64,000 nucleotides of DNA from Bugula neritina (Eukaryota > Animalia > Bryozoa). The stretch covers positions 7,310,027-7,374,026 of the forward strand of contig OZ037770.1 of NCBI GenBank assembly GCA_964035545.1, read 5' to 3'. Of this stretch, positions 17,662-64,000 are shown one piece after another. The translations under genes and the position numbers were made by a program. Position 1 is the stretch's first letter; the number at the start of each line of letters is the position of its first letter. The notes below the pieces were generated by a model. It saw only the letters and a list, made by a program, of their open reading frames with translations. It was not told where the DNA came from and did not search any database.

Positions 17662-17794
17662 GGATTTCGGTATGTTGCAGTATGTTGCAGGATATTTCAG
17701 CGTGTTGCAGTATATTTTAATGTGTTGCAGTGTAATTCAATATGTTACAGTGTAATTCAGTATGTTGCAGTATGTTGCAGTATGTTGCAGTATG

Positions 17795-32264: not shown

Positions 32265-33667
32265 GTGTTACAGTATATTTCAGTATATTACCGTAAACTT
32301 AGGTATGTTGCAGTTTGTTCCATTGTGTTGCAGTTCATTTCAGTATGTTACAGCGTATTTCAGTGTGTTGCAGTATGTTGCAGTATATTTCAGTAGGTTG
32401 AAGTATATTTCAGTATGTTGCAGTATGTTTCCGTATATTACTCTATATTTCAGTGAGTTGAGGTGTATTTCAGTGTGCTAGAGCATATTTCAGTATGGTG
32501 CAGTGTTTTTCAATGTGTTACAGTATATTTCAGTATATTACCGTATATTTAGGTATGTTGCTGTTTATTCCAATGTGTTGCAGTGTATTCCATTATGTTA
32601 CAGTGTATTTCAGTATGTTGCAGCATGTTGCAGAATATTTCAGTATGTTGCAGTGTAGTTCAGTATGTTGCAGTATGTTTCAGTATGTTACAACATAATT
32701 CAGTATTTTGCCGTACATTTCAGTGTGTTACAGTATACTTCGGTATGTTACAGTATGTTTCGGTATGTTCCAGTATATTTCAGTATGTTTCAGTATGTTT
32801 CAGTGTGTTGCAGTATATTTCACTGTGTTGCAGTGTATTTCAATATGTTACAGTGTATTTCAGTATGTTGCAGTGTGATTCAGTATGTTACAGTATATTT
32901 CAGTATGTTGTCATATGTTTCAGTATGTTACAACATAATTCACTATTTTGCCGTATATTTCAGTGTGTTACAGTATATTTCATTATGTTGCAGTATGTTT
33001 CGGTATGTTCCAGTATAATTCAGTATGTTTCTCAATGTTTCAGTATTATTTCAGTATGTTACAGTACATGTCCGTATATTACGATATACTTCGATATGTT
33101 GCAGTATATTTCAGTATTTCGCGTATGTTTCAGTGTGTTGCAGTGTATTTCAATATGTTACAGTTTATTTCAGTATGTTGCAGTCTATTTCAGTTTGTTA
33201 CAGTGTAGTTCAGTATGTTGCACTATGTTGCAGTATGTTGCAGTATATTTAAGTATGTTACAGTATATTGCAGTATGTTACAGTACATTTCCGGATATTA
33301 CACTATATTTCAGTGAGTTGCAGTGTATTTCAGTGTCCTGCAGCATATTTCAGTACGGTGCAGTGTTTTTCAATATGTTACAGTATGTTTCACTATATTA
33401 CTGTATGTTTAGGTATGTTGCAGTTTATTATAATGTGTTGCAGTGTATTTCATTATGTTACAGTGTATTTCAGTATGTTGCAGTATGTTGCAGGATATTT
33501 CAGTGTGTTGCAGTATATTTTAATATGTTGCAGTGTAATTCAATATGTTACAGTGTAATTCAGTATGTTACAGTATATTTCAGCATGTTGCAGTGTAATT
33601 CAGTATGTTACGGTATATTTCAGTAGTTTACCATAAATTCCGGTATGTTGTAGTATAATTGAATGTG

Positions 33668-33689
33668 CACAGCATAGTTAAGGTCATTC
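33668..33689 (+). repeat. E1 left TIR (L-type, spacer ATAG)
   Basis: CACAGC-ATAG-TTAAGGTCATTC; inverted partner at 39110-39131. Confidence 0.92.
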
Positions 33690-36477
33690 CTAGTTAAATA
33701 TCATCTCATAATCTAGTCTCAGTTCCTAGTTGCTATTGCTCTGTGGGCGGCATGCGTATTGCCTACTTGTCATAATTTAGCATGAGATTGAACAATTGCC
33801 AACAGACCATCAAATTAGCTAGGGCTGCACCTGTTCATATTACAACCATAGCTACAATCTATTGAGCAAGTATGCGGCCATGGCAAGCCTCAGCATCACC
33901 TCATTATTATTATTACAAGAGACCAGTGGTTCGTTTCATGTGCAATGTACTTGATGTACAAAGGAAGATAATTTTCGCAACTTCTTTTTCAACTAGCCAT
34001 GTAAAACTATTTCAGATTCTGGAAGCAAGCTAAATGCTAAAGCTAACTCAATATTTATCCATTTGCCTAGTCTAATAAAGTTGTTAATAATTACAGGCTT
34101 GACTACAACTTTTGAAATTCTATTGCAGATATTGTTTAAATAATGTAAAAGGCAGCCGTAACAAATAATTTAGAGATGCTCTTCTCTCAAAGCATAATGT
34201 TTTTAGGCTAGACTAATAATCTATCTGTTTACTATCATTGACTAACTTAAAGCCAAAATTACCTTCATCATTAAAATCCTCTTCTAGTGGCTAAAAACAC
34301 TTTTCAGTGCTAAACTATTATACAATCAGTTACAGACTCTGCACAATAGCTTAGAATAGTAAAGAGACTTGCAAATAGGTCAGATAGTCATGTGTGAGAT
34401 TTTGTTGGTAGCTGTAAAGATCAGATATGCAGAATTTTGTGTGGCCACTCTGACTTTAGATGGTTTGAGTAAAGGATTTGATTGCTGCAAGTTTCTAATA
34501 TAGCTAGTAGGTACTTTTGTGGTCCTATTGTACGTTAGTATAAGCATTAATCAACACTTATTGAGGTGAATTGGAATTTGGAACTATATAAAAGGTTAGA
34601 CCGTGAGCCTGTGCTTTAAATATATTCTATTTGCTCTCTGTTGTATACATGCAGTCTAAACTTTAAAAGGTCCAATCAAGCCTAAATGGCTTTTAGCTAA
34701 ATGTCCAAAAATTGGCTATGAGCTGTATCTTGTTGCCTTGCACTGAGAAATAAATTTGAGGCCAGCAAACAACTGGGCTCCTTTGTACTCCTGGCAGCTA
34801 CATATCAATAGTTGGTTATCATAGTTGCGCAGTGTTCACTCAAGCATTATATTATCGGCTTGCTGTATGCCAACTCAGAGCCAAGATTATCAACTATTTT
34901 ATGTTTCTAAATTTAGCATCTAATAGAAAAAGCTGCGTCTAGTTAGACTGACTGACACTATGCTTGCCTGAGTGAAACATCCAAAATGAACAGTTTTAAT
35001 CTTAGCTAGGCAAGAATTGAGAATTTGAAGAGAAAACCTCCTTAAGATAAAAAAAGATGTCCAGTGAATTTAGTTGTGTTTCCGGCCTGATAGGTGTCAG
35101 TTAAGCAGCTCAGATATAATTAGCAATGCATTTTCTATTATTCTGATGCTGCAGTTATAATATTCCATAACAAGAATTGACTTAATAATTTAGGGATATG
35201 CAACAAATCAACCAGTTTTATTCTAGTTAACACCAGATAGCCATTGCTAAAGATCAAAACGAAAATCAGTGTGGATTTTCAAACATAATATAATATATAT
35301 ACGCATGATCAGGCATAGAAGTAGCAAGTTCAATGAATAATGTAAACATGCAGAAGGTGTAACAGCTGTGTACTATTGTAAAGGAATAAGTCAGGCCTTC
35401 TTATAGCTATACATCCTATAATAAGTATATTACAAACATGGGGGAAATAATAGGTTAGTTCCCTAATTACTTTTCTTAAACATACATTACAATATTGAAT
35501 GTCAAAACTGATTTTGTAAAAAAGCAGAATCTATAAAAATTCAAGCTGCAAAAGCCTAACTAAAAGGCACATTGCTGGGGTGATTAGTCCTTTCAATTAT
35601 TAATAATTTTAGTTTTTATATCCGTTGATAAAAGTCCTATATTTTTGCAGGTAGAGTCTTGTTATACAGGTGTCAGTTGTAGAGTATTATGCTTTTTAAA
35701 CATAAAATATATCGTCTTGCAAGAGTAGAGAATTTAAAGATCCTAAGAGCTGATGCTGACATAGAAAGGATGTCCTGAGTACACATGCTATAGCATTTCT
35801 TTGACAAAACCTAATCATCTAGTAGCCCACTTGTTTTTGGAACTCAATCTAAAAATATAAATAGCAGTTTTCTCAATACATTGAAGAGTAATTTGCAACA
35901 TTTTGAATTTGAATTAACGTGTTCATACACCACAGTTAGTACTATAGTAATCTATATTCTGTAAAATCTACCTATACTGTAATCAGATCAAAGCTGCCTG
36001 CTGGTAACTTTTTAAAAAACAGAGCTCATAATTACAATTACTATTAGGTTGGATGCTCCCTTGAAATTGTAATTTTCAAATAATTTCTTAGTAGATATGA
36101 TTGCCATGATGACTCCAATCCTTTGAAACATATTATGCTTATAATGTATTTTAAGTTGGTCACTCACAGTAAATGTAGTTTAGTATGCAAGTAGTGGTAC
36201 AATTAGAGTTACTAAACAGAAGATTTTTAGTGCAAAACTATATTTTCTATGTGCCTACTCAACTACAGTACTCTAAATAATTGGAGAAAAAAGTGATAGT
36301 CAATAATAAATTTGGCCATTTTTCTTAGAGTTAATTACATAATGATGAAATGAACTCTGACAATTTTGATCTAGTCTTACAGTCTTAGTAATAGTTCTAC
36401 CATCAATGCATTCCTATTATACTATGCCTTTTTTATGAATATAAAACCCAATTTTGAAGTTTAGTTATACTGTGCAA

Positions 36478-36640
36478 TGCTATAATAATAATAATAATAT
36501 AAATATGAATATAATGATATTAATAATACTAATAGTTATAATACGCAGTATAGGTCTACTGTATAATACTATAATATACTAATAGTACAACTATACAAAT
36601 CCTATAAAATTGGTTAAAAATAAATTATAATATATTATTG
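36478..36640. repeat. AT-rich low-complexity (TAA)n-like tract inside E1; homolog at ~60180-60300 in E2
   Basis: TATAATAATAATAATAATAT and related runs; TTA-rich counterpart at the collinear position in E2. Confidence 0.7.
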
Positions 36641-38779
36641 CTTGAAAGCAATATGAAATATGCGAATTTGCTGAAGGAAGCAGTGGTACTCACTTACCCT
36701 TGAAGTTAAACTCTTAAAGTTAATCAAAGTACACTCTTTCATCCTAGGTTTGAGAGGTAAAAGACGTTTTTCACTCCGTTTTGAAATGATATTCCCACCG
36801 CCAGTTGGCAAGTTCACTTCACAGATTGCGTTTTAACATCGAATTTTTTATTTACCGAGCTAGCTTTTACTAGTAACATATCCAATCGGGCAAGATAAGT
36901 AACGCTTTACCAGCTACGTATGATATTATGCAAAGCAGTTTGTTTGAGGACAGTGCACTGCAGCTGCGGAATTACTAGGGTAGGTTTTGGAGGGGGGGGG
37001 GTGAATGTAAATTATAAACGTTCTATGTGCTTTTTTGAAAGCATTATGATAGCATACGCTTTAGTCATTTATATGTAAAATAAAACTTATTGTTTTATAA
37101 ATTATAATTTACTTATTTATTTATTTTACTATTGTTTTAAAAACTTGATAAAACTTTGAACACCCCCTCATAATACCACAACCGCACTCCACTCCTTTAG
37201 TTATAACATAATTAGATTAGAAGTCACATCTTCAATACAAACAAGCTATTCCGATGCCTGCTGCTGGCATTAGCTTGTAACTGCAGTGAAGCTTTTATAA
37301 CTGAGCTAGTAGGCTGAAAGTGCACTACCTATAGTTAGCTACCAATGTTATGAATTGGTGTAAGCAGTAAAGGAAATGAGTAGTATATATGTGTACAGAA
37401 ACTTGTACTCAAATGCTTATAGAACCCCATAGTTACGGTTATTTGAGATTCAGTCAGGTCCAAAAGAAATTGTGAAATTAAATACCCATTTATATTACAT
37501 CATGCTGAATCTGGTCACAGAATTGGCTATTCAAAGCTAATTGCAATTAAAACCATATTGCAATATAAAATAACCTGCCTAAGTTGCTCCTTATTGACGA
37601 GTAGTCTAGTTGGGCATTTAAGTTCAAACCATGAGCTCATTTCAGCTAAAAATAGCAGCACCTTGTCACTGCCTATATGAATGGCTTGCATGGTCACTGC
37701 CAGAGCCATTAGCAAAATGGCTTACTGCTATTGCAAGCCTGCTACATACAAGCCTCCTACCTGCAAGAACTATTTATCAATCAGAAACTACTTATTTAAT
37801 TGTAAGCTACCAGAATTTTAATACCACAATATTATAAAAAAAGTTGTCTAAGCTGGTAGGTGCGATATAAGCAGAAAAGCTAAAACAGCCTAAATTCTTA
37901 AATTTTTTTAAGAAATTCTAATTTGGTAACATGTCGGAATTATCTCTAAACTTCTTAAGCTGCATCTCACCGCCTGTAATAGGCCCAATAATACGAAATG
38001 CAGGGTTTAATTTCTCAATACCCTCATCACTGCACATACCTCATACTTATTATACTTAGCTGATAAGACTTTACTACTATTGTTGAAAGAAAGTTATGCA
38101 ATTACTATTCAATTGACTAAAAATTCTCTCCAACAATTTTGTAAATTCTGAAAACAAAGTTAATGTTTTAAAATAACAATACAGTGAGTTTGGTTACAGA
38201 TATAATATTATTAGTATAATTTAGATTACTCTACAGAACAACAAATTTGCATTGAAATCACACACAAAAGGCATAAAATTTAGTTGCCTTTACTCTCACT
38301 AGCATCCTAAGATGTCTGGGTTATCATACAGGCTGTATTACTAAACTGCTTTGCACTGGAAAGAAACAAGTCAAAGCAAGAAATGTACGCAGGCTTGAGA
38401 AACCGCTTCATATAAATACAACTGAAATCTAGATTCAGGGTAGATTGCGCATTGTACAGCCTCGCGTCTATAGGCAGTACAACGATATTGCAACCACCAA
38501 GATTCCAACTACTAGCTACTAAAATAATACAATAACCAGTCGCTCATACTGCCTTTTACCCATACCACAGTTTACTGCAGAGATGAACTTTAACCCTTTG
38601 GTTTAGCGCGCACAACTTGAATCGTAGGCCGCATGAGCTCCCTGTAATCATTATGATGGCTAAAATGCAGCGCAGCTCTACCGTGTTCAGCCAAGCGTGC
38701 AGACTGAGCGATATGTAAAATTTTTAATAAAATCAGTGTATAAATTACACGTTTACACCAATTCTATTGAAGTTATCTG

Positions 38780-39061
38780 AAAACTTTAAAAAGCCTCTAA
38801 TAGACAAATATCTTATAAAACTACATTCCAATTTTTGCAGAGATATGTTGCTTGGGAATTGAATAATTCGTGGGGCACTGAGACCATGTTTTTTTATGCG
38901 AAAATGGGCAATTTTTGACTGTTTTTAGAGCATAAAAAGGCAACGGGTTGGGTAGGTGAAGATTTTAAAAAAGCCTCAAATAGAGCAGCAAAATAATTAC
39001 AAGATGGTTTTTGAATTTTGATTCTAGCCTCAAAATTAGTCGAGTTATGAGTGGGGCACTG
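38780..39061 (+). repeat. Degenerate ~180-bp subterminal direct repeat (two units) at the R end of E1
   Basis: AAAAAGCCTCWAATAGA at 38788 and 38968; TGGGGCACTG at 38871 and 39052. Confidence 0.75.
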
Positions 39062-39109
39062 TTTCATATACAATTATAATGGAGCAATGAAATTACTGAT
39101 TCAGTAGAA

Positions 39110-39131
39110 GGATGACCTTAATCAAGCTGTG
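39110..39131 (-). repeat. E1 right TIR (R-type, spacer TTGA)
   Basis: Reverse complement reads CACAGC-TTGA-TTAAGGTCATCC. Confidence 0.92.
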
Positions 39132-42100
39132 TGTTGCAGTGTATTTCAATATGTTACAGTGTATTTCAGTATATTTCAGTATGCCGCTGTGTAATTCAGT
39201 ATGTTGCAGTATATTTCAGTAGGTTGTCGTATGTTTCAGCATTTTACAGTACATTTCTGTATATTACAGTATAATTGAATGTGTTGCAATGTATTTCAAT
39301 ATGTTACAGTGTATTTCAGTATGTTGCAGTATGCTGCAGTGTAATTATGCATGTTGCAGTACATTTCAGTATGTTGACGTATGTTTCAGTATGTTACAGT
39401 ACATTTCTGTATATTACAGTCTACTCCAGTGTGTTGCAGTGTATTTCAGTATGCTACAGCATAATATTTCACTATGTTGCAGTATATTTCAATGTCTCGC
39501 AGTATATTTCAGTATGGTTCAGTATGTTTCAGTGTGTTGCAGTATATTTCAATGTGTTGCAGTGTTTTTCAATATGTTACAGTGTATTTCAGTATGTTGC
39601 AGTATGTTGCAGTGTATTTCAGTATGTGACAGTGTATTTCAGTATGTTGAGTGTTATTGGGTAAGTTGCAGTATATTTCAGTATGTTGCAGTATGTTTCA
39701 GTATGTTACAACATAATTAAGTATTTTGCCGTATATTTCAGTGTGTTGCAGTATATTTCATTATGTTGCAGTATGTTTCGGTATGTTCCAGTATAATTCA
39801 GTATGTTTCTCAATGTTTCAGTATATTTCAGTATGTTACAGTACATGTCCGTATATTACGATATACTTCGATGTGTTGCAGTATATTTCATTATTTTGCA
39901 GTATGTTTCAGTGTGTTGCAGTGTATTTCAATATGTTACAGTTTATTTCAGTGTGTTGCAGTCTATTTCAGTTTGTTACGGTGTAGTTCAGTATGTTGCA
40001 GTATGTTGCAATATGTTGCAGTATATTTAAGTATGTTACAGTATATTGCAGTATGTTACAGTACATTTCCGTATATTACACTATATTTCAGTGAGTTGCA
40101 GTGTAGTTCAGTGTGCTGCAGCATATTTCAGTATGGTGCAGTGTTTTTCAATATGTTACAGTATGTTTCACTATATTACTGTATATTTAGGTATGTTGCA
40201 GTTTATTATAATGTGTTGCGGTGTATTTCATTATGTTACAGTGTATTTCAGTATGTTGCAGTATGTTGCAGGATATTTCAGTACGTTGCAGTATATTTCA
40301 GTATGTTGAAGTATGTTTCAGTGTGTTGCAGTATATTTCAATGTGTTGCAGTGTATTTCAATATGTTACAGTGTAATTCAGTATGTTGCAGTATGTTGCA
40401 GTATGTTGCAGTGTATTTCAGTATGTTACAGTGGATTTCGGTATGTTGCAGTATTTTGCAGTATATTTCAGTGTGTTGCAGTATATTTCAGTATGTTGCC
40501 GAGTGTTTCAGTATGTTGCAGTATGTTTTAGTATGTTACAGTATATTTCAGTATGTTGCAGTGTAATTCAGTATGTTACAGTATATTTCAGTAGTTTATC
40601 ATAAATTCTGGTATGTTGCAGTATAATTTAATATGTTGCAGTGTATTTCAATATGTTACAGTGTATTTTAGTATATTTCAGTATGTTGCTGTGTAATTAT
40701 GCATGTTGCAGTACATTTCAGTATGTTGACGTATGTTTCAGTATGTTACAGTACATTTCTGTATATTACAGTCTACTCCAGTGTGTTGCAGTGTATTTCA
40801 GTATGCTACAGCATAATATTTCACTATGTTGCAGTATATTTCAATGTCTCGCAGTATATTTCAATGTGTTGCAGTGTTTTTCAATATGTTACAGTGTATG
40901 TCAGTATGTTGCAGTATGTTGCAGTGTATTTCAGTATGTGACAGTGTATTTCAGTATGTTGCAGCGTGATTGGGTATGTTGCAGTATATTTCAGTATGTT
41001 GTCGTATGTTTCAGTATTTTACAGTACATTTCTGTATATTACAGTATATTTCAGTCTGTTGCAGTGTATTTCAGCATGTTGCAGTATGTTGCAGTGTAAT
41101 TCAGTATGTTACAGTGTATTTCAGTATGTTGTAGTATATTTCATCATGTTGCAGTACATTTCAGTATGTTGACGTATGTTTCTGTATGTTACAGTACATT
41201 TCTGTATATTACAGTATACTTCAGTGTATTTCAGTATGCTACAGAATATTTCAGTATGTTGCAGTATATTTCAGTAGGTTGAAGTATATTTCAGTATGTT
41301 GCAGTATGTTTCAGTATGTTACAACATAATTCACTATTTTGCCGTATATTTCAGTGTGTTACAGTATATTTCATTATGTTGCAGTATGTTTCGGTATGTT
41401 CCAGTATAATTCAGTATGTTTCTCAATGTTTCAGTATTATTTCAGTATGTTACAGTACATGTCCGTATATTACGATATACTTCGATATGTTGCAGTATAT
41501 TTCAGTATTTTGCAGTATGTTTCAGTGTGTTGCAGTGTATTTCAATATGTTGCAGTTTATTTCAGTATGTTGCAGTCTATTTCAGTTTGTTACAGTGTAG
41601 TTCAGTATGTTGCTGTATGTTGCAGTATGTTGCAGTATATTTAAGTATGTTACAGTATATTGCAGTATGTTACAGTACATTTCCGGATATTACACTATAT
41701 TTCAGTGAGTTGCAGTGTATTTCAGTGTCCTGCAGCATATTTCAGTACGGTGCAGTGTTTTTCAATATGTTACAGTATGTTTCACTATATTACTGTATGT
41801 TTAGGTATGTTGCAGTTTATTATAATGTGTTGCAGTGTATTTCATTATGTTACAGTGTATTTCAGTATGTTGCAGTATGTTGCAGGATATTTCAGTATGT
41901 TGCAGTATATTTCAGTATGTTGAAGTATGTTTCAGTGTGTTGCAGTATATTTCAATGTGTTGCAGTGTAATTCAATATGTTACAGTGTAATTCAGTATGT
42001 TGCAGTATGTTACAGTATGTTGCAGTGTATTTCAGTATGTTACAGTGGATTTCGGTAGGTTGCAGTATTTTGCAGTATATTTCAGTGTGTTGCAGTATAT

Positions 42101-45100
42101 TTCAGTATGTTGCCGAGTGTTTCAGTATGTTGCAGTATGTTTTAGTATGTTACAGTATATTTCAGTATGTTGCAGTGTAATTCAGTATGTTACAGTATAT
42201 TTCAGTAGTTTATCATAAATTCCGGTATGTTGCAGTATAATTTAATATGTTGCAGTGTATTTCAATATATTACAGTGTATTTCAGTATATTTCAGTATGT
42301 TGCTGTGTAATTATGCATGTTGCAGTACATTTCAGTATGTTGACGTATGTTTCAGTATGTTACAGTACATTTCTGTATATTACAGTCTACTCAAGTGTGT
42401 TGCAGGGTATTTCAGTATGCTAGAGCATAATATTTCACTATGTTGCAGTATATTTCAATGTCTCGCAGTATATTTCAATGTGTTGCAGTGTTTTTCAATA
42501 TGTTACAGTGTATGTCAGTATGTTGCAGTATGTTGCAGTGTATTTCAGTATGTGACAGTGTATTTCAGTATGTTGCAGTGTGATTGGGTATGTTGCAGTA
42601 TATTTCAGTATGTTGTCGTATGTTTCAGTATTTTACAGTACATTTCTGTATATTACAGTATATTTCAGTCTGTTGCAGTTTATTCCAATGTGTCGCAGTT
42701 CATTTCAGTATGTTACAGTGTATTTCAATATGTTGCAGTATGTTGCAGTGAATTCATTATGTTACAGTGTATTTCAGTATGTTGCAGTCTATTTCAGTAT
42801 GTTACAGTGTATTTCAGTATGTTGCAGTATATTTCAGCATGTTGCAGTACATTTCAGTATGTTGACGTATGTTTCTGTATGTTACAGTATGTTACAGTAC
42901 ATTTCTGTATATTACAGTATACTTCAGTGTATTTCAGTATGCTACAGCATATTTCAGTATGTTGCAGTATATTTCAGTAGGTTGAAGTATATTTCAGTAT
43001 GTTGCAGTATGTTTCAGTATGTTACAACATAATTCAGTATTTTGCCGTATATTTCAGTGTGTTACAGTATATTTCATTATGTTGCAGTATGTTTCGATAT
43101 GTTCCAGTATAATTCAGTATGTTTCTCAATGTTTCAGTATTATTTCAGTATGTTACAGTACATGTCCGTATATTACGATATACTTCGATATGTTGCAGTA
43201 TATTTCAGTATTTTGCAGTATGTTTCAGTGTGTTGCAGTGTATTTCAATATGTTACAGTTTAGTTCAGTATGTTGCAGTCTATTTCAGTTTGTTACAGAG
43301 TAGTTCAGTATGTTGCACTATGTTGCAGTATGTTGCAGTATATTTAAGTATGTTACAGTATATTGCAGTATGTTACAGTACATTTCCGGATATTACACTA
43401 TATTTCAGTGAGTTGCAGTGTATTTCAGTGTCCTGCAGCATATTTCAGTACGGTGCAGTGTTTTTCAATATGTTACAGTATGTTTCTTTATATTACTGTA
43501 TGTTTAGGTATGTTGCAGTTTATTATAATGTGTTGCAGTGTATTTCATTATGTTACAGTGTATTTCAGTATGTTGCAGTATGTTGCAGGATATTTCAGTG
43601 TGTTGCAGTATATTTTAATGTGTTGCAGTGTAATTCAATATGTTACAGTGTAATTCAGTATGTTGCAGTATGTTGCAGTATGTTGCAGTGTATTTCAGTA
43701 TGTTACAGTGGATTTCGGTAGGTTGCAGTATTTTGCAGTATATTTCAGTGTGTTGCAGTATATTTCAGTATGTTGCCGAGTGTTTCAGTATGTTGCAGTA
43801 TGTTGCAGTATGTTACAGTATATTTCAGTATGTTGCAGTGCAGTTCAGTATGTTACGGTATATTTCAGTAGTTTACCATAAATTCCGGTATGTTGCAGTA
43901 TAATTGAATGTGTTGCAGTGTATTTCAATATGTTACAGTGTATTTCAGTATATTTCAGTATGTTGCTGTGTAATTCAGTATGTTGCAGTATATTTCAGTA
44001 GGTTGTCGTATGTTTCAGCATTTTACAGTACATTTCTGTATATTACAGTATAATTGAATGTGTTGCAATGTATTTCAATATGTTACAGTGTATTTCAGTA
44101 TGTTGCAGTATGCTGCAGTGTAATTTTGCATGTTGCAGTACATTTCAGTATGTTGACGTATGTTTCAGTATGTTACAGTACATTTCTGTATATTACAGTC
44201 TACTCCAGTGTGTTGCAGTGTATTTCAGTATGCTACAGCATAATATTTCACTATGTTGCAGTATATTTCAATGTCTCGCAGTATATTTCAGTATGTTTCA
44301 GTATGTTTCAGTGTGTTGCAGTATATTTCAATGTGTTGCAGTGTTTTTCAACATGTTGCAGTGTATTTCAGTATGTTGCAGTATGTTGCAGTGTATTTCA
44401 GTATGTGACAGTGTATTTCAGTATGTTGAGTGTTATTGGGTATGTTGCAGTATATTTCAGTATGTTGTCGTATGTTTCAGTATTTTACAGTACATTTCTG
44501 TATATTACAGTATCTTTCAGTCTGTTGCAGTGTATTTCAGTATGTTGCAGTATGTTGCAGTGGTTTTCAATGTGTTACAGTATATTTCAGTATATTACCG
44601 TAAACTTAGGTATGTTGCAGTTTATTCCAATGTGTTGCAGTTCATTTCAGTATGTTACAGTGTATTTCAGTATGTGACAGTTTGTTGCAGTTTATTTCAG
44701 TAGGTTGAAGTATATTTCAGTATGTTGCAGTATGTTTCAGTATGTTACAACATAATTCAGTATTTTGCCGTATATTTCAGTGTGTTACAGTATATTTCAT
44801 TATGTTGCAGTATGTTTCGGTATGTTCCAGTATAATTCAGTATGTTTCTCAATGTTTCAGTATATTTCAGTATGTTACAGTACATGTCCGTATATTACGA
44901 TATACTTCGATATGTTGCAGCATATTTCAGTATTTTGCAGTATGTTTCAGTGTGTTGCAGTCTATTTCAATATGTTACAGTTTATTTCAGTATGTTGCAG
45001 TCTATTTCAGTTTGTTACAGTGTAGTTCAGTATGTTGCAGTATGTTGCAGTATGTTGCAGTATATTTAAGTACGTTACAGTATATTGCAGTATGTTACAG

Positions 45101-51100: not shown

Positions 51101-54100
51101 AGTGTGCTAGAGCATGTTTCAGTATGATGCAGTGTTTTTCAATGTGTTACAGTATATTTCAGTATATTACCGTATATTTAGGTGTGTTGCAGTATATTTC
51201 ACTGTGTTGCAGTGTATTTCAATATGTTACAGTGTATTTCAGTATGTTGCAGTATGTTGCAGGATATTTCAGTATGTTGCAGTATATTTCAGTATGTGGA
51301 AGTATGTTTCAGTGCGTTGCAGTATATTTCAATGTGTTGCAGTGTATTTCAATATGTTACAGTGTAATTCAGTATGTTGCAGTATGTTGCAGTATGTTGC
51401 AGTGTATTTCACTATGTTACAGTGGATTTCGGTACGTTGCAGTATTTTGCAGTATATTTCAGTGTGTTGCAGTGTATTTCAGTATGTTGTCGAGTGTTTC
51501 AGTATGTTGCAGTATGTTTTAGTATGTTACAGTATATTTCAGTATGTTGCAGTGTAATTCAGTATGTTACAGTATATTTCAGTAGTTTACCATAAATTTC
51601 GGTATGTTGCAGTATAATTGAATGTGTTGCAGTGTATTTCAATATGTTACAGTGTATTTCAATATATTTCAGTATGTTGCTGTGTAATTCAGTATGTTGC
51701 AGTATATTTCAGTAGGTTGTCGTATGTGTCAGCATTTTACAGTACATTTCTGTATATTACAGTATAATTGAATGTGTTGCAGTGTATTTCAATATGTTAC
51801 AGTGTATTTCAGTATGTTGCAGTATGCTGCAGTGTAATTATGCATGTTGCAGTACATTTCAGCATGTTGACGTATGTTTCAGTATGTTACAGTACATTTC
51901 TGTATATTACAGTCTACTCCAGTGTGTTGCAGTGTATTTCAGTATGCTACAGCATAATATTTCACTATGTTGCAGTATATTTCAATGTCTCGCAGTATAT
52001 TTCAGTATGTTTCAGTATGTTTCAGTGTGTTGCAGTATATTTCAATGTGTTGCAGTGTATTTCGATATGTTACAGTGTAATTCAGTATGTTGCAGTATGT
52101 TGCAGGATATTTCAGTACGTTGCAGTATATTTCAGTATGTTGAAGTATGTTTCAGTGTGTTGCAGTGTATTTCAATATGTTACAGTGTAATTCAGTATGT
52201 TGCAGTATGTTGCAGTGTGTTGCAGTATATTTCAATGTGTTTCAGTGTATTTCAATATGTTACAGTGTATTCCAGCATGCTGCAGTGCATTTCAGTATGT
52301 TGACGTATGTTTCAGTATGTTACAGTACATGTCCGTATATTACGATATACTTCGATTTGTTGCAGTATATTTCAGTATGTTGCAGTATGTTTCAGTGTGT
52401 TGCAGTGTGATTCAACATGTTACAGTGTATTTCAGTATGCTACAGCATATTTCACTATGTTGCAGTATATTTCAATGTTTCGCAGTATATTTCAGTATGT
52501 TTCAGTATGTTTCAGTATTTTACAGTACATTTCTGTATGTTTCAGCAAGTTGCAGTGTATTTCAGTGTGCTACACAATATTTCAGTATGTTGCAGTGTTT
52601 TTCAATGTGTTACAGTATATTTCAGTATATTACCGTAAATTTAGGTATGTTGCAGTTTATTCCAATGTGTTGCAGTTCATTTCAGTATGTTACAGTGTAT
52701 TTCAGTATGTGACAGTATGTTGCAGTATATTTCTGTAGGTTGAAGTATATTTCAGTATGTTGCAGTATGTTTCAGTATGTTACAACATAATTCAGTATTT
52801 TGCCGTATATTTCAGTGTGTTACAGTATATTTCATTATGTTGCAGTATGTTTCGGTATGTTCCAGTATAATTCAGTATGTTTCACAATGTTTCAGTATAT
52901 TTCAGTATGTTACAGTACATGTCCGTATATTACGATATACTTCGATATGTTGCAGTATATTTCAGTATTTTGCAGTATGTTTCAGTGTGTTGCAGTGTAT
53001 TTCAATATGTTACAGTTGGTTTCAGTATGTTGCAGTCTTTTTCAGTTTGTTACAGTGTAGTTCAGTATGTTGTAGTATGTTGCAGTATGTTGCAGCATGT
53101 TGCAGTATATTTAAGTATGTTACAGTATATTGCAGTATGTTACAGTACATTTCCGTATATTACACTATATTTCAGTGAGTTGCAGTGTGTTTCAGTGTGC
53201 TGCAGCATATTTCAGTATGGTGCAGTGTTTTTTAATATGTTACAGTATGTTTCACTATATTACTGTATATTTAGGTATGTTGCAGTTTATTATAATGTGT
53301 TGCAGTGTATTTCAGCATGTTACAGTGTATTTCAGTATGTTGTAGTATGTTGCAGTGTATCTCAGTATGTCACTGTGTATTTTAGTATGTTGCAGTTTCT
53401 TGCATTAAATTTCAGTATGTTGCAGTATATTTCAATGTGTCGCATTATGTTTCAGTATGTTGCCGTATGTTTCAGTGTGTTGCAGTACATTTCTGTGTAT
53501 TACAGTCTACTTCAGTGTGTTGCAGTGTATTTCAGTATGCTACAGCATATTTCACTATGTTGCAGTATATTTCAATGTCTCGCAGTATATTTCAGTACGT
53601 TTCAGTATGTTTCAGTGTGTTGCAGTATATTTCAATGTGTTGCAGTGTTTTTCAATATGTTACAGTGTATTTCAGTATGTTGCAGTATGTTGCAGTGTAT
53701 TTCAGTATGTGACAGTGTAATTCAGTATGTTGCTGTGTGATTGGGTATGTTGCAGTATATTTCAGTATGTTGTCGTATGTTTCAGTATTTTACAGTACAT
53801 TTCTGTATGTTACAGTTTATTTCAGTCTGTTGCAGTGTATTTCAGTATGTTGCAGTATGTTGCAGTGTTATTCAGTATGTTACAGTGTATTTCAGTATGT
53901 TGTAGTATATTTCAGCATGGTGCAGTACATTTCAGTATGTTGACGTATGTTTCAGTATGTTACAGTACATTTCTGTATATTACAGTATACTTCAGTGTAT
54001 TTCAGTATGCTACAGCATATTTCAGTATGGTGCAGTATATTTCAATGTGTTGCAGTATATTTCAGTGTTTTGCCGAATGTTTCAGTATGTTGCAGTATAT

Positions 54101-57100
54101 TTCAATGTGTTGCAGTGTATTTCAATATGTTACAGTGTATTTCGGTATGTTGCGCTCTATTTCAGTATGTTACAGCGTATTTCAGTGTGTTGCAGTATGT
54201 TGCAGTATATTTCAGTATGTTGCAGTATATTTCAGTATGTTACAGTACATTTCCGTATATTACACTATATTTCAGTGAGTTGAGGTGTATTTCAGTGTGC
54301 TAGAGCATATTTCAGTATGGTGCAGTGTTTTTCAATGTGTTACAGTATATTTCAGTATTTTACCGTATATTTAGGTGTGTTGCTGTATATTTCACTGTGT
54401 TGCAGTGTATTTCAATATGTTACAGTGTATTTCAGTCTGTTGCAGTATGTTGCAGTGTATTTCAGTATGTGACAGTATGTTGCAGTATATTTCAGTAGGT
54501 TGAAGTATATTTCAGTATGTTGCAGTATGTTTCAGTATGTTACAACATAATTCAGTATTTTGCCGTATATTTCAGTGTGTTACAGTATATTTCATTATGT
54601 TGCAGTATGTTTCGGTATGTTCCAGTATAATTCAGTATGTTTCTCAATGTTTCAGTATATTTCAGTATGTTACAGTACATGTCCGTATATTACGACATAC
54701 TTCGATATGTTGCAGTATATTTCAGTATTTTGCAGTATGTTTCAGTGTGTTGCAGTGTATTTCAATACGTTACAGTTTGTTTCAGTATGTTGCAGTCTAT
54801 TTCAGTTTGTTACAGTGTAGTTTAGTATGTTGTAGTATGTTGCAGTATGTTGCAGTATGTTGCAGTATATTTAAGTATGTTACAGTATATTGCAGTATGT
54901 TCCAGTACATTTCCGTATATTACACTATATTTCAGTGAGTTGCAGTGTGTTTCAGTGTGCTGCAGCATATTTCAGTATGGTGCAGTGTTTTTCAATATGT
55001 TACAGTATGTTTCACTATATTACTGTATATTTAGGTATGTTGCAGTTTATTATAATGTGTTGCAGTGTATTTCAATATGTTATAGTGTATTTCAGTATGT
55101 TGCAGTATGTTGCAGGATATTTCAGTATGTTGCAGTATATTTCAGTATGTTGAAGTATGTTTCAGTGTGTTGCAGTATACTCCAATGTGTTGCAGTGTAA
55201 TTCAATATATTACAGTGTAATTCAGTATGTTGCAGTATGTTGCAGTATGTTGCAGTGTATTTCAGTATGTTACAGTGGATTTCGGTATGTTGCAGTATTT
55301 TGCAGTATATTTCAGTGTGTTGCAGTATATTTCAGTATGTTGCCGAGTGTTTCAGTATGTTGCAGTATGTTTTAGTATGTTACAGTATATTTCAGTATGT
55401 TGCAGTGTAATTCAGTATGTTACAGTATATTTCAGTAGTTTACCATAAATTCCGGTATGTTGCAGTATAATTGAATGTGCTGCAGTGTATTTCAATATGT
55501 TACAGTTTATTTCAGTATATTTCAGTATGTTGCTGTGTAATTCAGTATGTTGCAGTATATTTCAGTAGGTTGTCGTATGTTTCAGCATTTTACAGTATAT
55601 TTCTGTATATTACAGTATAATTGAATGTGTTGCAGTGTATTTCAATATGTTACAGTGTATTTCAGTATGTTGCAGTATGCTGCAGCGTAATTATGCATGT
55701 TGCAGTACATTTCAGTATGTTGACTTATGTTTCAGTATGTAACAGTACATTTCTGTATATTACAGTCTACTTCAGTGTGTTGCAGTGTATTTCAGTATGC
55801 TACAGCATATTTCACTATGTTGCAGTATATTTCAATGTCTCGCAGTATATTTCAGTACGTTTCAGTATGTTTCAGTGTGTTGCAGTATATTTCAATGTGT
55901 TGCAGTGTTTTTCAATATGTTACAGTGTATTTCAGTATGTTGCAGTATGTTGCAGTGTATTTCAGTATGTGACAGTGTATTTCAGTATGTTGCAGTGTGA
56001 TTGGGTATGTTGCAGTATATTTCAGTATGTTGTCGTATGTTTCAGTATTTTACAGTACATTTCTGTATATTACAGTATATTTCAGTCTGTTGCAGTGTAT
56101 TTCAGTATGTTGCAGTATGTTGCAGTGTTATTCAGTATATTACAGCGTATTTCAGTATGTTGTAGTATATTTCAGCATGGTGCAGTACATTTCAGTATGT
56201 TGACGTATGTTTCAGTATGTTACAGTACCTTTCTGTATATTACAGTATACTTCAGTGTATTTCAGTATGCTACAGCATATTTCAGTATGTTGCAGTATAT
56301 TTCAATGTGTTGCAGTATATTGCAGTGTTTTGCCGAATGTTTCAGTATGTTGCAGTATATTTCAATGTGTTGCAGTGTATTTCAATATGTTACAGTGTAT
56401 TTCAGTATGTTGCGGTCTATTTCAGTATGTTACAGCGTATTTCAGTGTGTTGCAGTATGTTGCAGTATATTTCAGTATGTTGCAGTATATTTCAGTATGT
56501 TACAGTACATTTCCGCATATTTCACTATATTTCAGTGAGTTGAGGTGTATTTCAGTGTGCTAGAGCATATTTCAGTATGGTGCAGTGTTTTTCAATGTGT
56601 TACAGTATACTTCAGTATATTACCGTATATTTAGGTGTGTTGCAGTATATTTCACTGTGTTGCAGTGTATTTCAATATGTTACAGTGTATTTCAGTATGT
56701 TGCAGTATGTTGCAGGATATTTCAGTATGTTGCAGTATATTTCAGTATGTTGAAGTATGTTTCAGTGTGTTGCAGTATATTTCAATGTGTTGCAGTTTTT
56801 TTCAATATGTTACAGTGTAATTCAGTATGTTGCAGTATGTTGCAGTATTTTGCAGTGTATTTCAGTATGTTACAGTGGATTTCGGTACGTTGCACTATTT
56901 TGCAGTATATTTCAGTGTTTTGCAGTGTATTTCAGTATGTTGCCGAGTGTTTCAGTATGTTGCAGTATGTTTTAGTATGTTACAGTATATTTAAGTATGT
57001 TGCAGTGTAATTCAGTATGTTACAGTATATTTCAGTAGTTTACCATAAATTTCGGTATGTTGCAGTATAATTGAATGTGTTGCAGTGTATTTCAATATGT

Positions 57101-57710
57101 TACAGTGTATTTCAATATATTTCAGTATGTTGCTGTGTAATTCAGTATGTTGCAGTATATTTCAGTAGGTTGTCGTATGTTTCAGCATTTTACAGTACAT
57201 TTCTGTATATTACAGTATAATTGAATGTGTAGCAGTGTATTTCAATATGTTACAGTATATTTCAGTATGTTGCAGTATGCTGCAGTGTAATTATGCATGT
57301 TGCAGTACATTTCAGCATGTTGACGTATGTTTCAGTATGTTACAGTACATTTCTGTATATTACAGTCTACTCCAGTGTGTTGCAGTGTATTTCAGTATGC
57401 TACAGCATATTTCACTATGTTGCAGTATATTTCAATGTCTCGCAGTATATGTCAGTATGTTGTCGTATGTTTCAGTATTTTACAGTACATTTCTGTATAT
57501 TACAGTATATTTCAGTCTGTTGCAGTGTATTTCAGTATGTTGCAGTATGTTGCAGTGTAATTCAGTATGTTACAGTGTATTTCAGTATGTTGTAGTATAT
57601 TTCAGCATGTTGCAGTACATTTCAGTATGTTGACGTATGTTTCAGTATGTTACAGTACATTTCTGTATATTACAGTATACTTCAGTGTATTTCAGTATGC
57701 TACAGCATAT
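39132..57710 (+). repeat. 10-bp satellite array, block 2 (same orientation; higher-order register continues across the insertion)
   Basis: Same monomers and landmark variants as block 1; sequence after 39132 continues the motif order interrupted at 33667 (compare intact copy at ~43870-44010). Confidence 0.99.
48367..50557 (+). repeat. 1150-bp-offset duplication
   Basis: ORF pairs 48414/49564, 48627/49777, 49014/50164; match ends at 49407/50557. Confidence 0.92.
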
Positions 57711-57732
57711 CACAGCTTGATTAAGGTCATCC
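57711..57732 (+). repeat. E2 R-type TIR
   Basis: CACAGCTTGATTAAGGTCATCC, identical to the reverse complement of 39110-39131. Confidence 0.92.
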
Positions 57733-57780
57733 TTCTACTGAATCAGTAATTTCATTGCTCTATTATAATTATATATGAAA

Positions 57781-58060
57781 CAGTGCCCAACTCATAACTC
57801 AATCAATTTTGACTCTAGAAACAAAATTCAAAAACTATGTTGTATATCTTTTGCTGTTCTATTGGAACCTTTTTTAAAACTTTCATTTATGTCATCTCTT
57901 GCACTTTTATGCCCCAAAAACTACCAAATTTTGCCCATTTTTTCTCAAAAAAACATGGTCTCAGTGCCCGAAAAATAATTCAATCCATAATTAATATATC
58001 TTCGCAAAAATTGACCTATGAAGTGATAAGATATTTGTCTATTGGAACCTTTTCAAATTT
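57781..58060 (-). repeat. Degenerate ~180-bp subterminal direct repeat (two units) at the R end of E2
   Basis: CAGTGCCC at 57781 and 57962; TCTATTGGAACCTTTT at 57858 and 58038. Confidence 0.75.
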
Positions 58061-61000
58061 TCTGCATAGCTTCAATAGAATAAGTGTAAACATGTAATTT
58101 ATACACTAGTTTTATTAGAAATTTTGCTTCTCACTTAGTCTGCATGATTGGCTGAACACGGTAGAGCTGCGCTGCATCGTAGCCATCATAATGATTACAG
58201 GGAGCTCACGTGGCCTACGATTCATGTTGTGCGCGCCAAACCAAAGGGTTAAAGTTCACCTCTGCAGTAAAATAATTTGGCAGTATGAGACTGGTTATTA
58301 TATTATAGTAGCTATAGTAGTTGGAATCATGGTGATGACAATGTTGTTGTACTGCCTACAGCCAATACCCTGTACAATGTGTAATCTACTTTGGATCTAG
58401 ATTAATTAGTTGTAGTAAAATGAAGCAATTTCTGAAGTCTAACTAGGAAGCAGAGCTTCCAAGCTAGTGGCGTTCAAGTGTCTACTCTATAGTTTATATC
58501 CTGTATGTTTTTAGTCCAAAACAGTTTAGTAATTATACAGCTTGCATGAGAGCCCTTATAATGCTAATGAGAGGTAATAGCCACTATAAGTTTTTTAGCT
58601 TTTATGTGTGATTTCAAAGCACATTATTTTGTGGTTCTGTACAGCAATCTAAATTATATTAATAATATATTACTTGTAACCAAGCGTATTGTATTGTTAA
58701 TGCAAAATATTAAAAAATTTCAGAGTCAACAAAAATTGTTGGAGGGAAATTTTAATCAATTGAGTAGTAATTGCATAACTTCATTTTAAAAATAATCTTA
58801 TTACCAGTTGCATCAGTATACCAAGTATGAGGTATGTGTAGTGATGAGGATATTGAGAAATTAGACCCTATGTTGAGATGCAGCAAAAAAGTTTAGAGAG
58901 ACTTTTAACCTGTTCTCAAATTAGCATATTTTGACAAATTTAGGCTGTTTAAGCTTTTCTACTATTGCACCTATGTAGGCAACTTTTCATATCATCGTAA
59001 TACAATTCTGGTATGCTTGCAATTGAATAAGAAGTTTCTGATTGATACATAATTCTTGCATGTAGCAGGCTTGCAACAGCTGTAAGCCATTTTGCTAATG
59101 GCTCAAACAGTGGCCAGCCATTCATGTGCACTAATAAGGTGCTGCTATTTTTAGCTGAAATGAGCTCATGGTTTGAATTTAAATGCTATATTACTTGTCA
59201 CTGATACGTAACTTAGTTGAGTTATTTTATAAAAACAGCTTTAAATAGTCAAATATGTAACCTTATTGAGCATGATGTAATGTCTATAATGAGTATTCAA
59301 TTTACAATTTGTTTTAATACAACTGCATCTCAAATAACCATAACCATGGTGTTAGTGTATTTGAGTACATAGTTTCTGTACACATATACTGTTCATTTCC
59401 TTTACTTGCTTATAATAATTTATAGTGTTGGTAGCTTACTAGGTTTTGCACTTTCAGTCTACTAATTCAGTAAGGGCTTCACTACAGTTCAAACTTTCAA
59501 GTTAATGCAGCAGTATAATTATACAGACATCAGAAATGCTAAGCCTAGCTTGTTTGTATTGAAGACGTGACTTCTAATCTAATTAGGTTACAACTAAAGG
59601 AGTGGAGTATAGTTGTGGTATTATTAGGGGTGTTCAAAATTTTATCAATTATTTTTTTCTAAAAAAAGCAATAATAAAATAAATAAATAATTGTTTTTTT
59701 TAAGTAAATCAATATTTTTAAAACAATAATTTTAATTTTATATCAATGACTAAATCGCATGCTATCATTATAATGCTTTCAAAAAAGCACGTAGAACGTG
59801 TATAATTCACATCCACTCCTGGATAGGCTACCCTAGTCATTCCACAGCTGCAGTGCACTGCCTTCAAATAAACCGCTCTGTGTAATATCATACGTAGCTA
59901 TAAGCGTTACTTATCTCGCCCAGATTGATGTGTTACTAGTAAAAGCTAGCCCAGTAAATAAAATATTCGATATTAAATTACAATCTGCAAAGTGAACGTG
60001 CCAACTGGCAATGGGATTATCATGATAAAATTGAGTGAAGAACATCTTTTACCTCTCGAACCTAGGATGAAGGTGTGTACTTTGATTAACTTTAGGAGTT
60101 TAACTTCAAGGGTAAGTGAGTACTAGTACTACTGCCTCCTTCAGCAAATTCACATATTTTTATTTTATATTGCTTGCAAGCAATAATTTAATAATTATAC
60201 TTAATTTTATAGTATTTGTATAGTTGTACTATTAGTATATTACAGTAGGCCTATATACTGTGTATTACTATTACTATTATAACTGTATTATTATTACTAT
60301 TAGCATTGTGCAGTATCACTAAACTTCCAAGTTTGAGTTTTATGTTCAATAGTCATAGTGATGTAAAACTAGATCAAAATTGTCAGTTGGTTTTATTATT
60401 ATAATTATGTAATTAACTTTAAGAAAATTATCTAAATTTATTACTGGCCATAACTTTTTTCAAATTATTTAGAGTTCTGTGGTTGAGTATAGTCACATAG
60501 AAAATATATTTTTGCACTGAAAAGTTTCTGTTTAGTAATTCTAATTGTACTTATACTTGCAGCATACCAACTTACATTTACATTGAGTGACCAACTTAAA
60601 ATATAAGCAATGCATATGTTTCAAAATAATTGTAGTCATCATGGCAGTCATATATAATGGAGAATTATTTGAAAAATGCAATCTCAAGGGAGAATTCAAC
60701 GTAATAATTGTAATTATGAGCTGTGTCTTTTAAAAAGTTACCAGCAGCTTTTATGTAATTACGGTATAAGTAGATGTTACAAAATATGGACTATTATAGT
60801 ACTAACTGTGGTGTATGAGCATGTTAATTCAAATTGAAAATGTCGGAAATTACTTTTGCATGTATTGAGAAAACTGGTATTTGTATTTTAGATGAAGTGG
60901 ACTACTAGATGATCAGGTTTTGTCAAAGAAATGCTAGTATGTCTACTCAGCACATCATTTCTATAATGTCAGCTGCAGCTCTTATAGGATCTTTAGATTC

Positions 61001-62951
61001 TCTACTCCACTCTACTCTTTTTTTTTATCCAAAAAGGATAATACTCTACAATTGACACCTATATATCTCAAGACTCTACCTGTGGAAATAGGACTTTTAT
61101 CAAAGGATATAAAAACTAAAATTAAACTTAAAATAATTGCCAGGACTAATTACCCTAGCAATGTGTCTTTTGGTTAGGCTTTTGCAGCTTGATTTTCTGT
61201 AGATTCTGCTTCTTTACAAAGTCAGTCTTGCCATTATTCATTATTTCGTGTTTGAGAAAAATAATTAAGGAACTAACCTATTATTTCCCTCATGTTTGTA
61301 ATATGCTTATAGGATGTATTGCTATAAAAAGGCCTGACTTATTCCTTCACAATAGTTCACAGCTGTTATACTTTCTACATGTTCAATTTATTTATTGAAC
61401 TTGTTACTTCTATGCCTAATCATATGTATATAAAATAATTATGTTATGCTTTAAGATCCACACTGATTTTTGTTGTGATTTTTAGTAATGACTACTTGGT
61501 GTTTAAATAAATTTGGTTGATTTGTTCCACATGCTTAAATTCTTAAGTCAATTCTTTTTATGGAATAATATATCTGCAGTATCAAAATATGGCAGATAGG
61601 CTAATGCATTGCTAATATTTGAGCTTATTAAATGACACCTATCATGGACTGGAAAAAATCTGAATCCACAATGGATATCTTTTATTTTATCTTAAGGAGG
61701 CTTTCTTTTCAAAATCTCAATACTTGCCTAGCTGAGATTAAAACTTTTCATCTTGACTTTTTCACTCAGGCAAGCATGGTGTCAGTCAGTATAACTAGAC
61801 ACAGCTTTTTCTATTAGATGCTAAATTTAGAAACATAAAACAGTTGATAATCTTGGCTCTGAGTTGGTACACAAGTCCATGATATCATGCTTGAGTGAAC
61901 ACTGCGTTAGCAGTTGCCAGCAGTGCCCAGTAGCCCAGTGTTGAGCACCAAGATGTAGCTCATAGTCAATTTGGACATTCATCTAGAAGCCATGTAGGCT
62001 TGACAGGACTCTTCAGAGTTTAGACTGTATACAACAGGAAGCAAATAGAATATTTATAGCACAGGCTCACGTTTTAATCTTTTATATATAAGTTTCAACT
62101 CACTTCAATGAGTGTTGATTAATGCTTATACTAGTACCAAAGGGACAACACAAGTACTATAGCTTTATTAGAAACTTGCAGCAATCAAATCCTTTACCCA
62201 AACTCAAAGCAGCCGAACAAAATACTGCATATCTGCCCCTTACAGCTGCCAATAAATTCGCACACACATAACTATCTTACCTATGCTAAGCTATTGGGCT
62301 GTCTGTAACTGATAGTAAGAGTCAGCACTAAGAAGTCAATTTTAGCTTTTAGTTGGTGCAACTAAAAATGATTTTAATATTAAAGGTATTATTGGTTTAA
62401 GGTCAGTCAATAGTATTGAGCAGATATATATAAATAGTCTAGCCTGAAAACACTATGTTTTGAGAAATGAGCATATCTCTAAACTATTTGTTGCATCTGC
62501 ATTCTAAATTATTTAAATAATATCTGCATTATCATTTCAAAAGTTATAATCAATAATTATTTCATTAGACTAGCCAAATAGATAAATATTGAGTAAAAGT
62601 ATAAACATTTAGCTTGCTTGCAGAATCTGAAATAGTTTTACATTGTTCGCTGAACAGAAGTTATGAAAATCATCTTCCTTTGTACATCAAGTATATTGTA
62701 CATGAAATGAACCATGCACTAGCCTGTTGTAATAATAATGTGATGCTGAGGCGTGCCACGACCACATGCTTGCTCAATAGATAGTGATAATAGTTGCAAT
62801 GGAAATATAGGCGCAGCCCTAGCTAATGTGATGGTTTGTTGGCAATTGTTCAACCTCATGCTAAATTATAACAAGTAGGCAATACGCATGCCGCCCACAG
62901 AGCATTAGCATATAGGAACTGAGACTAGATTATGAGATGAATTTTTGCTTG

Positions 62952-62973
62952 GGATGACCTTAACTATGCTGTG
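62952..62973 (-). repeat. E2 L-type TIR
   Basis: Reverse complement CACAGCATAGTTAAGGTCATCC, one mismatch to 33668-33689. Confidence 0.92.
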
Positions 62974-64000
62974 ATTTCAGTATGTTGCAGTATATTTCAA
63001 TGTGTTGCAGCATATTTAAGTATTTTCCGAATGTTTCAGTATGTTGCAGCATATTTCAATGTGTTGCAGTGTATTTCAATATGTTACAGTGTATTTCAGT
63101 ATGTTGCGGTCTATTTCAGTATGTTACAGCGTATTTCATGTGTGTTGCAGTATGTTGCAGTATATTTCAGTATGTTACAGTATATTTCAGTATGTTACAG
63201 TACATTTCCGTATATTACACTATATTTCAGTGAGTTGAGGTGTATTTCAGTGTGCTAGAGCATATTTCAGTATGGTGCAGTGTTTTTCAATGTGTTACAG
63301 TATATTTCAGTACATTACCGTATATTTAGGTATGTTGCTGTTTATTCCAATGTGTTGCAGTGTATTTCATTATGTTACAGTGTATTTCAGTATGTTGCAG
63401 CATGTTGCAGAATATTTCAGTATGTTGCAGTGTATTTCAGTATGTTGCAGTATGTTTCAGTATGTTACAACATAATTCAGTATTTTGCCGTACATTTCAG
63501 TGTGTTACAGTATATTTCGGTATGTTACAGTATGTTTCGGTATGTTCCAGTATATTTCAGTATGTTTCAGTATGTTTCAGTGTGTTGCAGTATATTTCAC
63601 TGTGTTGCAGTGTATTTCAGTATGTTGCAGTGTGATTCAGTATGTTACAGTATATTTCAGTATGTTGTCATATGTTTCAGTATTTTACAGTACATTTCTG
63701 TATACTACAGTATACTTCAGTGTGTTGCAGTGTATTTCAGTATGTTGCAGTATGTTGCAGTGTAATTCAGTATGTTCCAGTGTGTTTCAGTATGTTGCAG
63801 TATTATTCAGCATGCTGCAGTACATTTCAGTATGTTGACATATGTTTCAGTATGTTACAGTACATTTCTGTATACTACAATATACTTCAGTGTGTTACAG
63901 TGTCTTTCAGTATGTTGCAGTATGTTGCAGTGTAATTCAGTATATTACAGTGTATTTAAGTATGTTGCAGTCTATTTCAGTATGTTACAGTGTATTTAAG
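62974..64000 (+). repeat. 10-bp satellite array, block 3; runs off the right edge
   Basis: Same monomers; closely matches ~48115-49170, including the private 9-bp monomer in AAGTATTTTCCGAATG. Confidence 0.99.

Follow-up and report, generated by a model that had tools for sequence, protein, structure and literature searches.

The window analysed here, a stretch of 64,000 nt from the Bugula neritina assembly GCA_964035545.1 (contig OZ037770.1, positions 7,310,027-7,374,026 of the forward strand), consists of a satellite array into which two copies of a large transposon family, termed E1 and E2, are inserted. Tandem Repeats Finder (TRF) described the array as a single satellite with periods of 10, 20 and 150 bp over positions 1-57710 and 62974-64000. 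Its 10-bp monomer reads CAGTATRTTK, and both base composition and TRF showed that the array is strand-asymmetric. E1 and E2, both of normal composition, are the only interruptions: outside them, a scan of the window for the monomer detected no other stretch of at least 40 bp free of a near-consensus unit, which bears out the initial annotation, where the two elements were named as the only non-satellite DNA in the 64 kb. Here, we found that one non-autonomous cut-and-paste DNA transposon family gave rise to both E1 and E2, each inserted precisely and independently of the other, and that insertions of this family are over-represented in the satellite across the genome.

Aligned over their full length, E1 and the reverse complement of E2 are 77-82% identical. 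The 5' end of the elements is CACAGCATAGTTAAGGTCAT and the reverse-complemented 3' end is CACAGCTTGATTAAGGTCAT. When E1 or E2 was removed together with exactly 2 bp, the restored 26-mer was found elsewhere in the window, 11 times for E1 and 14 times for E2; removal with 0, 1 or 3 bp left no matching 26-mer in the window. Both elements thus inserted precisely and duplicated 2 bp of their target, and the adjacent repeat units are unoccupied. The two insertion sites are unlike in monomer type and phase, and the nearest relatives of E1 and of E2 are other copies in the genome, not each other. Thus, E1 and E2 arose by separate transposition events, as had been proposed from their different target-site duplications (TSDs; TG and AT), sites and orientations. 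Their spacing of 18.6 kb is not significant by itself, with about 0.3 such pairs expected for 12 insertions in 9 Mb of satellite. Both elements are also non-coding, in line with the first description. No open reading frame longer than 78 aa was present in E1, and 115 frame pieces of at least 35 aa from E1 and E2 gave no Pfam match below E = 0.028. Two recurrent frames of 130 aa and 106 aa in subfamily A (the E1-like copies, see below) had no Pfam match either, and both are disrupted in E1. A search of E2 for Rfam families and tRNAs found none. Among public sequencing runs, one 2023 study of the organism (0.40 of words) and 2016 'symbiont metagenome' runs (0.05-0.07) were listed, and no RNA data set. 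The coordinates of all features are collected in Table 1.

Table 1. Satellite blocks, elements, terminal inverted repeats (TIRs) and TSDs in the window
Feature	Position	Strand	Basis
Satellite array, 10-bp monomer CAGTATRTTK with 20-bp and 150-bp higher periods	1..33665	+	TRF; 21 matches/kb to 20-mer consensus; no gap of at least 40 bp
E1 TSD, left copy, TG	33666..33667	.	End mapping, empty-site reconstruction
E1, non-coding TIR element, 5464 bp, subfamily A	33668..39131	+	End mapping, E1/E2 alignment, genome copies
E1 5' TIR, starts CACAGCATAG	33668..33689	+	End comparison
E1 3' subterminal region, ~180-bp duplication, motif spacing 179-181 bp	38778..39131	+	Repeat search
E1 3' TIR, minus-strand reading CACAGCTTGA	39110..39131	-	End comparison
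E1 TSD, right copy, TG	39132..39133	.	End mapping, empty-site reconstruction
Satellite array between E1 and E2	39134..57708	+	TRF, 20-mer density, gap scan
E2 TSD, left copy, AT	57709..57710	.	End mapping, empty-site reconstruction
E2, non-coding TIR element, 5263 bp, subfamily B, opposite orientation to E1	57711..62973	-	End mapping, alignment; no Pfam, Rfam or tRNA match
E2 TSD, right copy, AT	62974..62975	.	End mapping, empty-site reconstruction
Satellite array, remainder	62976..64000	+	TRF, gap scan

Used as queries against the 216-Mb assembly, E1 matched 46 pieces and E2 matched 50. A degenerate 20-mer covering both ends yielded 357 matches at up to two mismatches, compared with 2 for a reversed control, and the 83 family ends with at most one mismatch correspond to about 50 loci. 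At this number the family is far too rare in 216 Mb for two copies within 64 kb to be an expected genome-wide occurrence, which answers the early concern that it might simply be abundant. All copies start with CACAGC and finish with GCTGTG, and 19 of the 22 positions of the inverted ends (CACAGC...GCTGTG) pair in most copies. The left and right ends differ at positions 7, 9 and 10 (ATAG versus TTGA) in every copy of both subfamilies and are therefore distinct and conserved. A perfect 2-bp TSD flanks 16 of 17 complete copies; the dinucleotides show no consensus and include TG, CC, AC, AA, TA, TT, AT, CA and CG. In a tree of the complete copies, the subfamilies A (E1-like) and B (E2-like) are separated by ~20%, terminal branches measure mostly 1-3%, and near-identical pairs of copies reach 99.7-99.85% identity. 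We conclude that these sequences represent a large non-autonomous TIR transposon family which, judging by the similarity of its copies, has moved recently.

Is the satellite hit more often than its size would predict? Two satellite 20-mers match the whole assembly 193,290 and 155,311 times. They occur at densities of 21.1 and 17.8 per kb within the window, and of 21.8 and 17.7 per kb in 15 satellite flanks on other contigs. Dividing the genome counts by these densities gives a satellite total of 8.7-9.2 Mb, i.e. 4.0-4.3% of the assembly. We inspected the flanks of 26 independent loci, the satellite share being measured for this TIR family alone, and found 11 independent insertions in satellite, distributed over eight contigs (E1 and E2 in the window; L004, L005, L007 and L008; L009 with its duplicate L010; L014/27; L017/24; L020; L026), versus 15 elsewhere. 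The ~24 loci beyond this set were screened with patterns joining an element end to a satellite signature, which recovered 9 of the 11 known events and added one end only (C8:811757), belonging to a copy whose other end is outside satellite. Tested against a genomic share of 4.2%, the satellite holds 42% of the inspected loci (11 of 26; binomial p = 3e-9) and 22% of all loci (11 of ~50; p = 6e-6; 22-24% at 11-12 of ~50). In the most conservative count, with E1 and E2 left out, it holds 19% (9 of 48; p = 1.5e-4). The 5-10 fold satellite excess over a genomic share of 4.0-4.3% is real. The loci thus do not follow the amount of sequence available, a distribution that had been named beforehand as one that would refute the first proposal.

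That proposal, targeting of the satellite or selective retention in it, stands as far as the enrichment is concerned, but not as a target specificity. Since three quarters of the family loci are outside the satellite, among them five copies within retrotransposons, the enrichment is a bias. In a satellite-specific transposon nearly all copies would be found in the target, which holds neither for the inspected loci (11 of 26) nor for the family overall (11-12 of ~50). A satellite share of 22-42% versus 4.0-4.3%, made up of 11 events with distinct TSDs and flanks, is the picture of a target-biased transposon.

Within the satellite, insertion is confined in phase. All 11 TSDs begin at monomer positions 5-8 (P ~4e-4), with four elements in plus and seven in minus orientation, and in every case the staggered cut is placed within the T-A-T-R-T-T half of the unit. 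As all TSDs lie in only four monomer phases, the enzyme therefore reads some feature of the repeat.

Which enzyme could this be? Going by its ends alone, the family fits a non-autonomous CMC-like (CACTA/Mirage/Chapaev) element: the termini are 5'-CAC...GTG-3' with TIRs, and the TSD of 2 bp is short and within the range of 2-4 bp, so that the initial placement in this group, and not with Transib, is upheld. Mirage elements and some animal EnSpm elements have a 2-bp TSD. In the wider CMCT clade, TSDs of 2-5 bp and CA..TG ends are reported (PMC12730594), and Chapaev elements have invariable CAC/GTG ends (PMC4079192). Repbase places Mirage and Chapaev under EnSpm and classifies non-autonomous elements by ends and TSD, with the terminal 11 bases matching a curated family (PMC4455052). 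A CMC-type (CACTA/Mirage/Chapaev-like) DDE transposase would mobilise the elements in trans, and it is probably carried by two long copies with the same ends. These candidate carriers, of 12.4 kb and 15.9 kb, have perfect family ends and are located at C6:7085149-7097590, 225 kb upstream of the window, and at C4:15502832-15518728 (15,897 bp). Their similarity to E2 is limited to the 3' 1.5 kb, where identity is 72-86%.

Other superfamilies were considered and rejected. Transib makes a 5-bp TSD versus the 2 bp seen here in the TSD survey and at the empty sites, and the Pfam RAG1 profile had no match in the genome (see below). Tc1/mariner elements require a TA TSD, and the TSDs of the family are varied. 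PIF/Harbinger-ISL2EU (PHIS) transposases were rejected because 0 of 113 DDE_Tnp_4 matches (124 candidates scored genome-wide) lie inside any long TIR-bounded copy. For a KDZ/Zisupton-like origin, 0 of 10 KDZ matches are in family copies and the TSD is 2 bp, not 8 bp.

We speculate that a CMC/RAG-like cut-and-paste transposase prefers the helically phased 10-bp satellite, which is possibly centromeric, at a fixed rotational position that it recognises via DNA shape or satellite chromatin. Taken as a whole, this account is tentative and somewhat short of probable. On its central element, namely that insertion preference and not only better survival is the main source of the satellite excess, our confidence and our doubt are evenly matched; the data point to aimed insertion rather than prove it. 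The cue is likely to be structural or chromatin-based, and not a primary-sequence motif, in a repeat that presents a flexible T-R step once every helical turn.

The foremost alternative is retention of copies in a safe haven. Insertion would then be near-random, genic and regulatory copies would be lost by selection or ectopic recombination, and the survivors would accumulate in the satellite and in other junk DNA. We regard this as possible, though rather doubtful as the main cause. Copies in the satellite show no greater age than those elsewhere, by terminal branches as well as by nearest-neighbour identity. One of the two youngest pairs, L007 (C192) and L008 (C2), differs at 8 of 5363 positions (99.85% identity), and both of its members are in satellite, with unrelated flanks and different TSDs; a very recent jump has therefore entered the satellite. 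Both observations speak against retention, and the strict monomer phase would be unexpected if the transposase ignored its target. Furthermore, retroelements bearing a reverse transcriptase (RT) occupy at least 2192 candidate loci, many of them with long intact frames, along all chromosome arms, so large insertions are widely tolerated. The amount of retroelement DNA is at least that of the satellite, yet only 5 family copies are inside retroelements versus 11 in satellite, a lower count that favours preference but is suggestive only.

Several findings weigh against aimed insertion by a CMC-like enzyme, and a number of them speak at the same time for retention. About 75% of the family loci are outside the satellite. 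The second of the two youngest pairs (L021/L029, 99.7% identity, both on C8) is located outside as well; a bias already present at insertion would be read from one young pair of two and from the lack of an age difference, at small n. Of the 15 inspected non-satellite copies, 5 are within long terminal repeat (LTR) elements or long interspersed nuclear elements (LINEs), a pattern that selection would also give. Retention further gains from the nested insertions found in several copies, as in heterochromatin, and from the compactness of the 216-Mb genome. Arabidopsis CACTA1, reportedly pericentromeric in nature while inserting throughout the chromosomes in ddm1 lines, also counts on this side. 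The sample itself is small (11 satellite insertions versus 15 elsewhere), and non-satellite target sites do not resemble the monomer, so that no simple recognition rule emerges. As to the enzyme, whole-genome searches with the Pfam profiles Transposase_21 (PF02992) and RAG1 (PF12940) returned 0 matches each, and neither E1 nor E2 contains a recognisable coding domain.

A different source of bias could be the density of a target motif. Tc1/mariner elements insert at TA and piggyBac at TTAA, and a transposase with a preference for some short sequence present once in every 10-bp monomer would find in the satellite its densest source of sites. That 11 of 11 satellite insertions are confined to monomer positions 5-8, at the flexible T-R step or next to it, agrees with such a motif. 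Outside the satellite, however, TSDs and flanks are without consensus, and the sites are no more monomer-like than control positions (p = 0.78). A simple shared target motif is thus unlikely, and we give motif density little credence as the source of the excess.

Multiplication of one or few insertions, whether through amplification of an array, exchange between arrays or duplication in the assembly, is already largely refuted and highly improbable: L009 (C106:127122-132496) and L010 (C106:177173-182547), 50,051 bp apart and identical over the element, the 1.5 kb to its left and ~650 bp to its right before they diverge, do show that arrays are able to copy an embedded element, either as a large satellite repeat unit carrying it along or through assembly duplication, and were counted as one event, but the other 10 events differ in TSDs, phases, orientations and flanks, the flanks of L007 and L008 match only at the general satellite level (76-78%), and 11 (E1) and 14 (E2) paralogous sites within the same window are unoccupied.

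How does the family compare with known systems? With the CMC group it shares CAC...GTG ends, short TIRs and a short TSD, and large gene-less derivatives are common there. It differs in the length of its TSD (2 bp, compared with 3-4 bp, often TWA, in Chapaev and 3 bp in plant CACTA elements), and a repeat search revealed no clear array of short subterminal repeats. Its ends start with CACAG, as do the heptamer of the recombination signal sequence (RSS) and the ends of Transib, whereas Transib and ProtoRAG have 5-bp TSDs and the family here always 2 bp. A 2-bp TSD is also found in some PHIS members (PMC12730594). In having entered a major satellite array several times independently, the family resembles the CRM chromoviruses and Athila in the centromere arrays of Arabidopsis; these, however, are LTR retrotransposons with an integrase, whereas the family is cut-and-paste and mostly outside a satellite whose centromeric status is a possibility. 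For satellite-invading retroelements, targeting has been deduced from the absence of an age gradient (PMC12477314, PMC7385966), in the case of Athila in PMC7385966. Dada, in snRNA and tRNA genes, and Pokey, in 28S rDNA, are DNA transposons that likewise enter tandem multicopy sequence with little harm (PMC3706591, PMC4912750). Both use one exact site; insertion of the family is variable within a 4-base phase window and follows no evident recognition sequence.

The family itself is an ordinary new member of the non-autonomous transposons that are CMC-like by their ends. What sets it apart is the phase-specific excess in the satellite, and its interest depends on the cause of that excess. To our knowledge, targeting of satellites or centromeres is well documented for retroelements and hardly for cut-and-paste transposons. 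A true preference would make the family a DNA-transposon counterpart of centromere-targeting retroelements. If the bias acts at insertion, it bears on target choice by RAG-like and CMC enzymes and on the gain and loss of mobile DNA in satellites. If the cause is retention, this is one more new but unremarkable transposon family residing in heterochromatin. The family is young and, with ~50 copies, small, and its host is an animal with a small genome; it offers a testable excess, a fixed phase within a 10-bp repeat of about one helical turn, and candidate autonomous copies.

The satellite is itself unevenly arranged. Genome-wide matches of the satellite pattern number 26,494 in forward and 166,796 in reverse orientation, and the arrays lie at one or two sites per large contig (C1 14.7-15.0 Mb, C2 17.8-18.3 Mb, C3 17.9-18.0 Mb, C4 14.7-15.0 Mb, C5 9.68 Mb), an arrangement that would suit a centromeric satellite. 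The initial impression that the satellite takes up no other transposable element (TE) holds within the window, but not at the edge of one array, where a LINE is located ~400 bp from the family copy L017. A mir-876-like Rfam match at window positions 62981-63073, in plain satellite, scored 28.5 bits versus a gathering score of 88 bits and was rejected as a chance match.

The family loci are also unevenly spread over the contigs. About half are on C6 (~15) and C8 (~11), as against 2 and 1 on C1 and C2, which are much longer. Harbinger-type and RT matches lack this skew, which may stem from local hopping or from chromosomes rich in repeats. Nested insertions of 4-9 kb interrupt several family copies, with overlaps of 5-6 bp at the joints (L018, C8:801256-809138, C8:3266754-3275435 and C5:9748379-9752501), and the insertion in L018 encodes a Copia-type RT (4944-6161, minus strand; RVT_2, E = 3e-44). 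Many apparently intact mobile-element genes are present in the genome, with DDE_Tnp_4 open frames of ~276 aa, KDZ frames of 451 aa and RT frames that score almost identically and reach 1558 aa, which suggests that several TE families are currently active.

Two further repeats touch the family. The related 20-mer CACAGGATAGTTAAGGGCAT has ~270 genome matches, clustered beside the C1 satellite arrays (C1:14.9-15.6 Mb) and elsewhere. It was dropped as the end of a control family, as its matches are not in inverted pairs and as it sits at L020:5885-5904 in the loop of a palindrome whose arms derive from subterminal sequence of the E1 type; the 20-mer may be the mark of a sister family of repeats that carries end-like modules. 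The second, a 17-bp tandem repeat with the unit TATGTTATACAGTATAT (L029:159-658, 29 copies, 91% matches), adjoins a family copy outside the satellite, and its unit loosely resembles that of the main satellite.

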